Of a stretch of 64,000 bases of DNA, positions 10,490 to 14,867 are shown one piece after another. The notes below the pieces were generated by a model. The model saw only the letters and a list, made by a program, of their open reading frames with translations. It had not been told where the DNA came from and ran no database searches. The stretch's first letter is position 1, and every line of letters begins with the position of its first letter. The DNA is taken from positions 695,492 through 759,491 of the forward strand of contig JAIVFI010000013.1 of NCBI GenBank assembly GCA_025558095.1. The letters run 5' to 3'. The translations under genes and the position numbers were made by a program. This stretch comes from Hyaloraphidium curvatum SAG 235-1. Taxonomy: Eukaryota > Fungi > Monoblepharomycota.

Positions 10490-12070
10490 CTATCGCCCCT
10501 TTACCCGGGGATCCAACCTCGCCCACAGCTTCCCCGCCGCGACCTTGACGGAGCTCGAGAACTTTGCCCCGTCCCAGCTCTCGAAAACCCCCTCGGCCAC
10601 CGGCCCGCACCACCCCGCGCAGTCGAACTCCGCGACCAGCCTAGCCAGCACCATCCGCATCTGCATCCGCGCCAGGCTCTGCCCGATGCAGTTCCGCGAG
10701 CCCCACGAGAAGCCGGGGAGGTGCCGCCGCACCTCGGGATCCGCGGGATCCTTCCACCCCCCGTCGCCGCCCAGCGAGGGAGGGAGGAACCTCTCCGGGC
10801 GGAACGAATCGGCGTCCGCGCCCCAGTACGATACGTCGGAGCCGATGGCCGCAGTGGAGCAGCTGATCGTCGTTCCCGCGGGGATGTGGTACCCGCCGAG
10901 CTCGACGTCCTCGGGGGCGTACCGCGCGATGAAGCTCGCGATGGGGCGCAACCGCAGGGTTTCCCAGATCACGGCGTCGAGGTACGGCAGCGACCTCAAC
11001 GCGGCGTGGTCGAGAGGTCCGGCGGCCGAGGCGGCGTCCACCTCGGCCTGCAGCCTCCGCCACACCCGCGCCCCGCGGCACATCATGAAGCCCGTGGCAA
11101 AGGAGAGGGAGGATGCGGTGGTTTCCTGCCCGGCGATGAAGAAGAGCAGGGCCTCGGCGACGACCTCGCGCTCCGAGAGGCGTTCGCCCGAATCGGCGTC
11201 GGTCGAGCTGACGAGGGCCTGCAGTAGGTCGTTCCGGAGCGGCGCCTTGCCTTCCGCGGCGGCAAGGATGCGGTCCTTTACCGTGACTTCGGCGAATGCC
11301 TGCAGCTCGGCCAAGGCCGCCCTGCATTTCGCCACGTACGGGACGAAGCCGAAGTACGAGACGTCGAGGCCGACGAGGGACAGCACGGCGCGGAGGCCGG
11401 CGTAATGGAACCCATAGGTTATGTTGCGGCCCACATGCGCGGCGGAAGGGCCGTTCCCGGCCTTTTCTGTGTCCGCGTTGTCGCCGCCGAGCAGGGCGCG
11501 GGAGTCCATGCCGAACGCGAGGCCCAGGATGACATCCAGTGTCAGGTCGTCGAACGCCTTGACCACCTCGGTCTTTCCTTTCTCGCGAATTTCGCGCGTC
11601 AAGCGGGCGACGAGATCGTCCACGTGCCCGGCAATCATCGGCTCGACTCCCTCCAACGTGGAGGGGGCGAAGGCCGGGAACACGAGCCTCCTCCTCCGCC
11701 TGTGTTCCCCCGATTTCTTGTCTAAATTCTCCATCGTGAAAACCGAGTCCAGGTCCGGGTACGGCATCCGCAGGGCGCGGAACACGGGCGGCTTGGGCAG
11801 ATCGAGCTTGACCGCCACCGCGTCGGCGAGGACGCCGTCGGCGACCATCAGCTCGCCAGGGCGCACGCGGACGAGCTTGCCGTATTTCCGCGCGGTGCGC
11901 ACCGCGTGCGCGGGGAGGTCGCCGAGGGGGAAATGGATTGCGTGCCACAGCGAGGTGAAGCGCGCGAGGACGGGGCCGGGGACGCGCGACAGGGGAGAGT
12001 GCGCCGCGGTCCACGCGTGCCACGCGATGTAGAGGAGAATGATGAGCACGAGCAGCGCCGTGAGCCCCAT
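10490..12070 (-). CDS. Cytochrome P450, intronless
   Basis: N-terminal anchor MGLTALLVLIILLY, I-helix FFIAGQETTA, ETLR, FRPERF, and heme motif GFSWGSRNCIG. Confidence 0.95.
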   Translation of the reverse strand: MGLTALLVLIILLYIAWHAWTAAHSPLSRVPGPVLARFTSLWHAIHFPLGDLPAHAVRTARKYGKLVRVRPGELMVADGVLADAVAVKLDLPKPPVFRALRMPYPDLDSVFTMENLDKKSGEHRRRRRLVFPAFAPSTLEGVEPMIAGHVDDLVARLTREIREKGKTEVVKAFDDLTLDVILGLAFGMDSRALLGGDNADTEKAGNGPSAAHVGRNITYGFHYAGLRAVLSLVGLDVSYFGFVPYVAKCRAALAELQAFAEVTVKDRILAAAEGKAPLRNDLLQALVSSTDADSGERLSEREVVAEALLFFIAGQETTASSLSFATGFMMCRGARVWRRLQAEVDAASAAGPLDHAALRSLPYLDAVIWETLRLRPIASFIARYAPEDVELGGYHIPAGTTISCSTAAIGSDVSYWGADADSFRPERFLPPSLGGDGGWKDPADPEVRRHLPGFSWGSRNCIGQSLARMQMRMVLARLVAEFDCAGWCGPVAEGVFESWDGAKFSSSVKVAAGKLWARLDPRVKGR

Positions 12071-12209
12071 CGAAGCTACGGGCGAAGGAAATGTCGGCGG
12101 GGGAATACAAAGGCGACCTCGAAGAGGCAGCCGCACACAGCAACCAAACAACGCGCGACGCCCGCGTTCATCAACGTGATCCGCGTCATCGAGTCGCTGA
12201 GGTGTTCCA

Positions 12210-12731
12210 TTACTTGAAAGCAAACTGCGGAAGGATCCACCGCCCGTTCTGATCGCCCATGACTGTCACGTACAAGCTCCTCTCCCCCGCACCAGCGGAC
12301 GCGTCGAGCAGCGGCTGGTACGCCGGATCGCCCGGCACCCTGAGGTCGTCGACCACGTTTCCGCTGTCGAGATCCAGCAGGGTCACCAGGTTGTTGTCCG
12401 CGGCGTTGATTTCGACAAGCTGGTATTCCTTCGGATGGCCGTCGCGTCGATCCTCGCTCGGCAGCGGAGCGACGGGGCAGGCACACACTTTCCGCGTCAC
12501 GATGGGGACGAGCACTTCCTGGCCCGCATCAAATTCTTCGATGATCACCTGCCCCGATTGCAGCTGAAGACGGCCCACCGTGGGTCCGGTGCACCGCTTC
12601 CGGCCGGTTCCGCTACTGATCTTCACCTTGCCCTCTCCGGCGGTCTCGACTTCATCGATCCTGCAAGATACATCGCCGTTCAGCAGGGCCCAGCCGCCGG
12701 GTCGGAGCGACGAGGCCGGCTGGGTCGCCAT
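12210..12731 (-). CDS. eIF5A-like protein lacking the hypusine loop (copy A)
   Basis: ASSLRPGGWALLNGDVSCRI...VPIVTRK|EYQLVEI...LLDLDSGNVVDDLRVP...LYVTVM aligns along eIF5A. There is no SKTGKHGHAK. Confidence 0.8.
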   Translation of the reverse strand: MATQPASSLRPGGWALLNGDVSCRIDEVETAGEGKVKISSGTGRKRCTGPTVGRLQLQSGQVIIEEFDAGQEVLVPIVTRKVCACPVAPLPSEDRRDGHPKEYQLVEINAADNNLVTLLDLDSGNVVDDLRVPGDPAYQPLLDASAGAGERSLYVTVMGDQNGRWILPQFAFK

Positions 12732-12951
12732 GGATTGCTCGCGTTCCGCGCTTTTTGAGACAGGCGGAGGAACGACGTCGATCGCGACCGATCGCGTTGA
12801 ACAGAGGTGCATGCTGCTCAGGATGAGAGGACTCGCGGATGCAATTGAGTAGAAATGTGATTCTCCTTCGAAGCACGCTCTGGGTCGTCTGCAGGCCAAC
12901 GCGTGCGATCCATCCGCGCGGTCCGCGGTGTCGTGTCGCTGCAGCACCCCT

Positions 12952-13485
12952 CTACTTAAGCAAGAACTGCGGCAGGATCCACCGCGCTTTCTGGTCGCTC
13001 ATCACCGTCACAAACACGTTCCTTTCCCCCGCGCCGCCATACCCGTCTACCAGCGGCTGGTAGGCGGGGTCGCCCGGCACCCTCAGGTCGTCGACGATGT
13101 CGCCGTTCTCGGGGTCCATCAGGGTCGCGAGGTTGCCGTCGTCGGCGTTGATGTCGGTCAGCTGGTAATCCTTAGGAGTGGAATCTACGCGTCGGTCGCG
13201 GCGCGGCCGGGGAGGAGGTAGCACCCACGGTCCGCGTCACGATGGGAACGGGCACATCCTCCCCCTCATCGAATTCCGCGCTCTGCTCCTGCCCCGATTG
13301 CAGCTGATGACGGCCGACCCTTAGCTCGTCGGCCCATGTCCCCGTCGGGCGCGCGGACCCACGCCGGTGCCGGTGACCTTCAGCCTGCCCTCCCCGGCGG
13401 GCTCGACGCCGGTGATCTTGCACGACATGTCGTTCAGCGTGACGTAGCCGCCGCGTCGGAGCGAGGAGGCTGGCTCGGTGGTCAT
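12952..13485 (-). CDS. eIF5A-like protein lacking the hypusine loop (copy B)
   Basis: Two GTGGGT..AG introns give MTTEPASSLRRGGYVTLNDMSCKITGVEPAGEGRLKVTGTGLQSGQEQSAEFDEGEDVPVPIVTRTDYQLTDINADDGNLATLMDPENGDIVDDLRVPGD...VFVTVMSDQKARWILPQFLLK. Confidence 0.85.
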
Positions 13486-13713
13486 TTCTGGGAGGGACGC
13501 GTTCGCGTGCTTTTGAGACGGGCCGAGTGGCTGCTGCGGATGCAGATACCGAGGACCATGTGAATCATGTCGACCCGCAAGAGAACATGATTGCGAAGAA
13601 GAGGAACTTGCAGAGTCTCAGGGATTGAGCACTCGAAGGCCAGACGGGTTGCAGCGAGGGGAACGTTGGGTCGCGGCGAAAGTGGCCTTCGATTGACGAT
13701 CCTCCGGGACGCT

Positions 13714-14867
13714 TCACATCGCAGGCCCCAAATCGATGGTCGCGTACGACGCCTGCGCGACCGCCAGCACCGTCCCCTCCGCATCCGTGACCTCGGCTTC
13801 CACCGAGACCCGCCTGCCCGCCGAACCCGTCGCCTTTGCTGTCGTGCGCATCCAGCCCGAGCGGAAGGCCGAGCCGGCGGGAGTGAATGCGAGGCGGAGC
13901 GACGCGGTGCCGGCCATCTTGCGGGACGAGGTGATGGCGGCGAGGGCGATCCAGGCGCTGCGGGAAAGCGGATCGGATCACGGACCGTTGCGGCGCCCTT
14001 TGAGGGGACCCACTCCACGAGGGTGAACAATACAGCAGGATGCAGCCAGCCATCCGCCGCGAGCAGCTCCGAGCTGTCGACTCCGTGCCATGCTTCCAAG
14101 CCCGCCGGCGACGCCACGGACGCCGCGCGGCGGTAGAGCCTCCCCTCGCGCCGCGAAACCCAGACGAATCGGGCGCCCGAGACCATTTCGGGGAGGTCCG
14201 CCGTGCGCGGGTCGGCGGGGGGTTGGAGCTGCAGCCAGACGATGGGGAGGCCGGCGGAGATGGAGGATAGGAGGGAGGAGTCGGTGCCCGCGGTGGCGAT
14301 TCCGCCGTGCTGGGATACCAGAGCCCGCAGACCGTCGGGTATCGGGTCCAGGGGATCTGCAGATGGGCCCGGGTGCCGCAGTTCCTGCCCCGAGTGATCC
14401 TCTGCGGGGCCCCAGGTGGTCTCGACGACGACAAGGTCCCTGTCCTTCTCGCGGTCCCGCAGCACCGCCCGCCATCGTCCTCCCCCCTCCGCGCCCCCGA
14501 GCCGCGAGCAGCCGACCTCGATCCACCCGGGCAGCGGCACCGGCCTCGCGTACCGCACATCGACCTCCCTCAGCACCAATCCGCCCCGCCCGCCCTGCGA
14601 CGCCAGCACCTTGGCCACGTCCGCGCCGATGGCCATCGCCGCCCCGCCGTGCATCAGCGCCCGCGTGCCGCCCATCCCGCCGCCCAGCAACGGGCCGCAG
14701 AGCACCGCCGTGCGGCCGCCCGAGGACACGACGAACCGCGCCGCGCCCGTGGGATGGCGGAGCGCGGGCCACAGGGGAAGAGGCCCGAGGCCGGATGCGG
14801 AGTCGGCGAGGAGGGGGCCATAAGTGCCGGAAAGGATGTCGGAGACCCAGGGAGGAGGATCGCTCAT
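13714..14867 (-). CDS. Double hotdog-fold thioesterase-like protein
   Basis: First domain MHGGAAMAIGAD...VDVRYARPVP. Second domain DGWLHPAVLF...TASLRLAF...VEAEVTDAEGTVLAVAQASY. One intron near 13960-14012. Confidence 0.65.

Follow-up and report, generated by a model that had tools for sequence, protein, structure and literature searches.

What has become of two adjacent genes that resemble the translation factor eIF5A but whose hypusine-bearing loop is missing? This question is raised by a locus in the early-diverging fungus Hyaloraphidium curvatum, contained in a window of 64,000 nucleotides (nt; GC 62–75%) that forms the final 64 kb of contig C13. A sequence-only reading of the window had pointed to a tandem pair of eIF5A-like genes of ~140 amino acids (aa) each, and we could locate both on the minus strand; they are referred to here as copy A and copy B. 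Our analysis confirms that A and B are real, expressed tandem genes of eIF5A descent, which are no longer able to act as a hypusine-dependent factor. With a probability of about 0.6, we read them as hypusine-independent binding proteins that would act through the OB domain, with copy B as the main form. The features of the pair are as follows.

12952–13485, minus strand: copy B gene (public model P0002, 138 aa), with ATG at 13485 and stop at 12952; from open reading frames (ORFs) and translation
13485–13363, 13303–13229 and 13170–12952, minus strand: exons of copy B, the last including the stop codon
13362–13304 (59 nt) and 13228–13171 (58 nt), minus strand: introns of copy B, GT..AG, phase 0
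13384–13407, minus strand: remnant of the hypusine hairpin tip in copy B, VEPAGEGR; from the loop columns of the alignment and translation
12955–13170, minus strand: exon 3 of copy B, OB-fold domain and last beta-strand (..RWILPQFLLK), the most conserved and most constrained part
12210–12812, minus strand: copy A gene (public model P0001, 159 aa, from ATG 12812), with stop at 12210
12812/12731–12627, 12563–12489 and 12428–12210, minus strand: exons of copy A, the first with two possible starts, the last including the stop codon
12626–12564 (63 nt) and 12488–12429 (60 nt), minus strand: introns of copy A, GT..AG, phase 0
12627–12650, minus strand: remnant of the hairpin tip in copy A, VETAGEGK, at the end of exon 1; from alignment, translation and splice data
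12564–12626, minus strand: intron 1 of copy A, in frame; from the A/B DNA alignment, the splice joint (CT..AC on the plus strand) and a continuous 173-codon ORF
12213–12428, minus strand: exon 3 of copy A, OB-fold domain and last strand (..RWILPQFAFK); from translation, identity and the ratio of nonsynonymous to synonymous divergence (dN/dS)

The start of the copy A model, ATG 12812, is in frame, has an A at -3 and is the earliest AUG of the observed transcript; the alternative ATG 12731 is the one common to copy B. The proteins end in ..PQFLLK (B) and ..PQFAFK (A). Searches with the pair were based on the deposited models P0001 and P0002 or on single exons.

Fold, hairpin and charge

Profile comparisons confirm A and B as true eIF5A homologues, and a structure model of copy B predicts the corresponding two-domain shape, an SH3-like barrel followed by an OB fold. 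The Pfam family PF01287 (eIF-5a OB domain) matched the deposited models with 37.4 bits (B) and 33.5 bits (A), over its gathering cut-off of 24.2, and single exons gave 30 and 28 bits. However, the N-terminal SH3-like family PF21485 was only weakly matched in Pfam by either protein (17–20 bits, cut-off 27.1). When a profile of A and B was compared with PDB, 28 matches were obtained, all of them eIF5A or aIF5A (top match 48.9 bits, E 5e-12). The descent from eIF5A claimed by the sequence-only reading is in agreement with these matches. Bacterial EF-P consists of three domains, EFP_N, EFP and Elong-fact-P_C. Neither copy appears to belong to it, as only eIF-5a families were matched in Pfam and no EF-P chain was found among the PDB sequence and fold matches.

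Structure prediction, which had been suggested as a way to look for the SH3-like and OB domains, was carried out with AlphaFold2 for copy B only. With an alignment of 108 rows, the model reached a mean predicted local distance difference test (pLDDT) value of 92.5 and contained both the barrel and the OB fold. The N-terminal half formed the expected barrel (pLDDT 95–98), and the full-length alignment with eIF5A was collinear. Strands were predicted at residues 118–124 and 129–137, which places the conserved tail as the final strand of the OB fold. Foldseek superimposed the model on eIF5A structures with template modeling (TM) scores of 0.84–0.88 and a root-mean-square deviation (rmsd) of 1.6–2.3 Å. 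Copy B aligns with eIF5A without gaps except for a 5-residue shortening of the loop, but it lacks the flexible N-terminal extension of ~20 residues that is present in eIF5A.

In eIF5A, the Lys of the (S/T)xKTGKHGxAK hairpin is the substrate of deoxyhypusine synthase (DHS). The canonical loop, STSKTGKHGHAK, corresponds to ..VEPAGEGR.. in copy B and ..VETAGEGK.. in copy A, so that the hairpin is shorter by 5 residues, and neither the loop columns of the alignment nor the translations contain a modifiable Lys or a GKHG motif. The change is located within a single uninterrupted genomic exon and is therefore not an artefact of annotation or splicing. Thus, the loss of the loop, which had been proposed from the EPAGEGR and ETAGEGK strings, is borne out in contiguous exon sequence. 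The conserved Lys that marks hypusinated eIF5A is absent from both A and B; the resident canonical gene keeps its loop.

A second difference concerns the charge of the N domain, which in 80S-eIF5A structures touches rRNA and P-site tRNA. Its net charge is -3 in copy B and -5 in copy A, whereas in 80 hypusine-type proteins the mean is +5.6 (range +1 to +11), and the basic N domain of functional eIF5A is thus found in neither copy. The net charge of the OB domain is -7 and -10 in the pair, with a family mean of -8.5. Judged from the translated sequences, the features needed of the translation factor have been lost from A and B: the hypusine Lys and GKHG are gone, the hairpin is shortened and the N domain is acidic rather than basic.

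The H. curvatum genome contains one canonical eIF5A gene with an intact loop (contig C9, 282428–282960) as well as a DHS gene (contig C13, 554517–555535). The normal hypusine pathway is therefore covered by genes other than A and B. A weak genome match at position 451958 of contig C42 proved spurious, as it is located inside a P-type ATPase ORF. A third eIF5A-derived gene was detected on contig C27 (481618–481806; L017:1432–1695, minus strand). It encodes an N domain only, which is matched by PF21485 with 31 bits, above the cut-off; the OB domain is missing, and the loop is altered (..SGSRTGKPQSGLEK..). Just downstream is an ORF rich in Ala, Glu and Pro.

Transcripts, splicing and selection

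Transcription was analyzed over positions 12000–13700 of the window using one small public run that is stored as contigs and labeled only as guessed RNA. One spliced contig was found for each gene. All four introns were removed at GT..AG, and the joints were equal to those of the public models. The copy B contig covers 12960–13169, 13228–13303 and 13363–13497 (depth 447, gaps of 58 and 59 nt), and the copy A contig covers 12171–12427, 12488–12563 and 12627–12842 (depth 65, gaps of 60 and 63 nt). A genome search detected no intronless copy of A or B in H. curvatum, and the spliced contigs therefore derive from RNA. Thus, on the question of expression and splicing that the sequence-only reading had raised, this contig-only run indicates that both genes are transcribed and spliced.

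The two copies differ in how intron 1 is removed. A deletion of ~14 nt in copy A destroys the donor position used by copy B, and splicing has moved to a donor (GTGAAG) that lies 7 codons further upstream. Because this donor directly follows the VETAGEGK remnant, the copy A mRNA also lacks the next 7 residues, that is, strand beta-4, which follows the loop in copy B. With its 63 nt, intron 1 of copy A preserves the frame, so a form retaining it would be translatable; it would add 21 residues starting with ..VKISSGT.., which are similar to the beta-4 strand ..LKVTGTG.. of copy B. The contigs of copy A show the spliced form only, and contigs drop rare variants.

Since all introns are in phase 0, each exon was codon-aligned separately before the counts were pooled (131 codons). 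Between A and B, dN was 0.215 and dS was 0.49, giving a dN/dS (omega) of 0.44 with a bootstrap 95% interval of 0.26–0.73; omega was 1 or higher in only 2 of 5000 bootstraps. By part, omega was 0.68 in exons 1 and 2 (N domain) and 0.31 in exon 3 (OB domain). Intron 2 and the flanks have diverged about as much as silent sites. Thus, A and B have diverged under purifying selection, as had been claimed from their open frames, and this selection is strongest on the OB domain. GC content at third codon positions (GC3) is typical of the host, 0.80 and 0.90 in the pair versus 0.89 in the neighboring P450 and the resident eIF5A.

The neighboring cytochrome P450 gene (window 10493–12070, minus strand, Pfam 209 bits) starts ~140 nt 3' of the copy A stop on the same strand, so that B, A and P450 form a tight head-to-tail row. 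Upstream of copy B, a short ORF (13717–13917, minus strand) has a weak match to PF20789, the acyl-CoA thioesterase C-terminal domain (18.7 bits, below cut-off), and probably represents the final exon of an adjacent gene.

Relatives and origin of the pair

A hidden Markov model search of 1.84 billion representative proteins yielded 222 matches at E ≤ 0.001, of which the top non-self match had only 70 bits; no orthologue of A or B is therefore known. A word-index search of 5.8 billion proteins with copy A returned only the two H. curvatum proteins themselves, which are listed as hypothetical. Similarly, a scan of metagenome DNA with the A+B profile yielded a single ordinary eIF5A, 31% identical, but no orthologue, and an atlas search with copy B gave generic eIF5A-like clusters of 134–138 aa only.

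The best non-self matches form an environmental eIF5A clade (P0003, P0158–P0165 and many fragments) in which the hypusine loop is kept as STAKTGKHGSAK. In the respective genomes, these proteins bear the annotation of the ordinary eIF5A. They have in common with A and B the strings ..PIVTR.., ..DDLRVP.D.EY.PL.. and a terminal ..(R/K)(K/W)ILPQF..K. The tails in this clade read ..DDLRVPDDAEYAPL.. or end in ..RKIQSQFLLK, and P0159 terminates in ..QFLLK as does copy B; the terminal strand, ..RKILPQF..K or ..QFLLK, stops at the same residue as in the pair. On the other hand, the environmental proteins differ from A and B in that the loop is complete, the N domain is basic (+3 to +6), and the OB domain contains an insert of 5 residues not found in the pair. 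The sequence-only reading had regarded the C-terminal motif as both shared by the two copies and new. It is indeed common to A and B, but because the tail also occurs in these loop-bearing eIF5As, it is an inherited feature and no novelty of the pair.

The environmental proteins come from compact genomes (contigs up to 1.05 Mb) with a conserved gene order, ALDH22 - eIF5A - Sdh5; P0160 is encoded on two contigs of ~1 Mb (JGI Ga0620986_00059 and Ga0620608_0000005). Intronless eIF5A genes with the STAKTGKHGSAK loop are located at L009:3001–3495, L010:3001–3495, L011:3484–3978 and L012:949–1443. The aldehyde dehydrogenases (ALDH) of these genomes have ~50–55% identity to named proteins of stramenopiles and the green lineage (plants, Helicosporidium). 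They are only 40–46% identical to the ALDH of H. curvatum, and the environmental clade is therefore not closely related to this fungus.

A maximum-likelihood (ML) tree was built from 76 rows under LG+C20, in which the resident H. curvatum eIF5A was represented by exon 2 only and HEX-1 sequences were not included. In this tree, A and B were placed inside the P0003/P0158–P0165 clade (ultrafast bootstrap 98, Shimodaira–Hasegawa-like approximate likelihood ratio test 97), and a tree of the C domain only, to which fragments were added, gave the same placement (100/97). The resident eIF5A grouped instead with those of Mucoromycota and Zoopagomycota. Consistent with this, the OB domain of copy B has 45–47% identity to P0159, P0162 and P0163 but only 29% to the resident protein. 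As far as sequence comparison goes, the nearest relatives of A and B are thus hypusine-bearing environmental eIF5As, rather than the resident eIF5A or HEX-1. Their descent is probably from a second eIF5A with a tail of the ..ILPxF..K type, which may have been acquired or may be an ancient paralogue.

The strongest competitor, which we consider a serious possibility although short of an even chance, is that A and B arose by duplication of the resident eIF5A, as the sequence-only reading had implied, and that the likeness of their C-terminal halves to the environmental clade reflects convergence or a long-branch artefact. Intron 1 of copy B coincides in position and phase with the intron of the resident canonical gene (..VTGTG|LQSGQ.. 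and ..VGID|IFTGK.., respectively), pointing to a local origin or to gene conversion. In the environmental clade, the members sampled either lack introns (P0159, P0160) or carry them elsewhere, judging from models in which introns were retained (P0164, P0156 and P0157). GC3 and intron size also fit the host genome. In addition, forcing A and B into the fungal group was not rejected by the approximately unbiased (AU) test, either with all columns (delta lnL 31, p 0.156) or with the C domain only (delta lnL 39, p 0.073). A further AU constraint, which joined A, B and exon 2 of the resident gene (p 0.36), was uninformative, as the short partial row was free to move to A/B. A local duplication is opposed by the supported placement in both trees, by the specific strings shared along the protein and by the difference in C-domain identity. 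Thus, the phylogeny that had been suggested with the canonical eIF5A included favors the environmental clade over simple duplication, but it does not reject a fungal origin.

Possible roles and related loop-less proteins

The hypusine hairpin of eIF5A reaches the peptidyl-transferase center. Since both this part and the RNA-contacting charge are gone, the site of action of A and B is most likely outside the catalytic core. Derived from an ancestral eIF5A gene, A and B retain its two-domain shape but not its full hairpin. In the scenario that we favor, they would serve as small acidic binding proteins, either adaptors or regulators, that use the conserved surface of the OB domain together with the last strand. 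Copy B would be the main form and copy A a more degraded or specialised duplicate.

Several observations weigh against this reading, among them the shared intron position and the AU results described above. The model of copy B leans on an alignment that consists mostly of true eIF5As (from the single sequence, pLDDT was only 42.9, compared with 92.5 with the alignment), so the fold is supported but not independently proven. For a family of translation factors, the omega of 0.44, and especially that of 0.68 in the N domain, indicates relaxed constraint, and the stem branch of A and B in the ML tree is long (~2 changes per site). In copy A, the original donor and one entire strand are missing. 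Contig depth is a rough guide only, as expression levels are not obtainable from contigs, and the binding role itself is inferred.

A wider form of the argument would place A and B among other proteins in which the same change took place. Many full-length loop-less eIF5A-like proteins of ~130–157 aa were found among the search matches, with a hairpin that is 5–6 residues shorter and an N domain that has lost its positive charge (mean -0.7). The named cases are P0008, P0026, P0048, P0134 and P0143 from Streptomyces and Kitasatospora, P0067 from Mortierella sp. AM989 and P0289 from Cerrena zonata; the others are metagenomic. They differ from A and B in that they are located elsewhere in the tree and lack the ..ILPQF..K tail. 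In the tree, the 22 loop-less rows require at least 10 state changes, although many forks are weak. P0067 and P0289 nest among ordinary fungal eIF5As, and their loop loss therefore appears independent of that in A and B. We found no description of these loop-less proteins in the literature searched, nor of hypusine-less eIF5A paralogues other than HEX-1.

The Streptomyces and Kitasatospora proteins are of the eukaryotic type and 138–157 aa long (for example, L013:6001–6417 of Streptomyces sp. NBC_00096, CP108221.1). The gene for P0026 has SpdY spread-protein genes on one side and a relaxase gene on the other, and the region therefore looks like a conjugative element. It also adjoins a gene with a eukaryote-like RRM_1 domain.

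It is conceivable, though we regard it as doubtful, that A and B represent a domesticated foreign eIF5A of protist or algal type and, at the same time, one case of a repeatedly evolved, loop-less and acidic class with a shared non-translational binding function. As part of that same tentative reading, the candidate class would also include the proteins of Mortierella, Cerrena, other fungi and Streptomyces mobile elements.

It is somewhat less probable again that the pair are functionless, transcribed leftovers of a duplicated eIF5A that had lost its loop, in which the apparent constraint is residual or noise. The long stem branch and the relaxed N domain would be expected in this case, as would the state of copy A, whose contig depth is ~7x below that of copy B and which has lost the donor of intron 1 as well as 7 core-strand residues. 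The absence of a known orthologue and the presence of a further truncated eIF5A-like gene on contig C27 point in the same direction. However, at a dS of 0.49 both frames remain open, and the four phase 0 introns are still spliced at GT..AG. Moreover, 4998 of 5000 bootstraps gave an omega below 1, the OB domain had the lowest value, and AlphaFold confidence for the two-domain fold was high for copy B. Taken together, these findings favor binding proteins under constraint over decay.

The sequence-only reading had also put forward a decoy that competes with eIF5A at the ribosome. In this case, A and B would dock at the ribosomal E site via the OB domain and the L1 stalk, compete with hypusinated eIF5A and so tune translation. 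The copy B model does resemble ribosome-bound eIF5A chains in overall shape (TM 0.83–0.85), and the constrained part of the pair is the OB domain, whose acidity is typical of the family. But the tip of the hairpin is lost, and the shift of the N domain from about +5.6 to negative values means that it should be repelled from the RNA-lined pocket. This makes a decoy less likely, and we consider it improbable.

The remaining comparison is with HEX-1, which self-assembles and forms the crystalline core of a peroxisome-derived body, the Woronin body. H. curvatum lives as single cells without septal pores that such a body could plug, which counts against an analogue of this protein. HEX-1 is derived from eIF5A and has lost the hypusine site (PMC4838825); it is found only in Pezizomycotina, and its type 1 peroxisomal targeting signal (PTS1) follows the consensus S/A-R/S-L (PMC7559983). 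A and B resemble it in their eIF5A origin, in the lost hypusine site and in the same broad two-domain architecture. However, their host belongs to a phylum outside this range, Monoblepharomycota, and the termini ..FAFK and ..FLLK do not fit the PTS1 consensus, in line with the lack of a PTS1 noted from the sequence. No HEX-1 chain was retrieved at E ≤ 10 by the A+B profile search of PDB, although HEX-1 entries are present there. The copy B model matched HEX-1 structures (1khi, 7asi, 8cd5, 8qlu, 8qnu and 8qlw) with TM scores of only 0.48–0.54 and rmsd values of 5.5–6.1.

These sequence and model comparisons support the view that A and B are not relatives of HEX-1 beyond their eIF5A ancestry. 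The pair had been described as an independent, HEX-1-like neofunctionalisation. The independence is supported by the missing sequence match, the TM score of 0.52 versus 0.84–0.88 for eIF5A, and the phylum of the host, but a HEX-like function is not, and nothing was found in favor of the structural polymer that had been suggested. Self-assembly of a protein with the eIF5A fold into a dense body or polymer would accord with the parallel in ancestry and with the high contig depth of copy B, but it is very unlikely given the lack of a PTS1, the poor structural match (rmsd ~6) and a sequence in which nothing predicts lattice contacts.

To our knowledge, eIF5A is the only protein that carries hypusine, and HEX-1 of filamentous ascomycetes is the only characterized reuse of its fold without this residue. 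A and B show that the same outcome can be reached by a second, unrelated route in a unicellular fungus that diverged early: the loop is gone, the RNA-facing domain has reversed its charge, and the OB domain stays under selection. Since loop-less proteins of this kind also occur in several other fungi and in Streptomyces, shedding of the hairpin may be a recurrent route by which the eIF5A fold is recruited. The apparent kinship of the pair with a non-fungal eIF5A clade further raises the possibility that the gene for a core translation factor was transferred and then repurposed.

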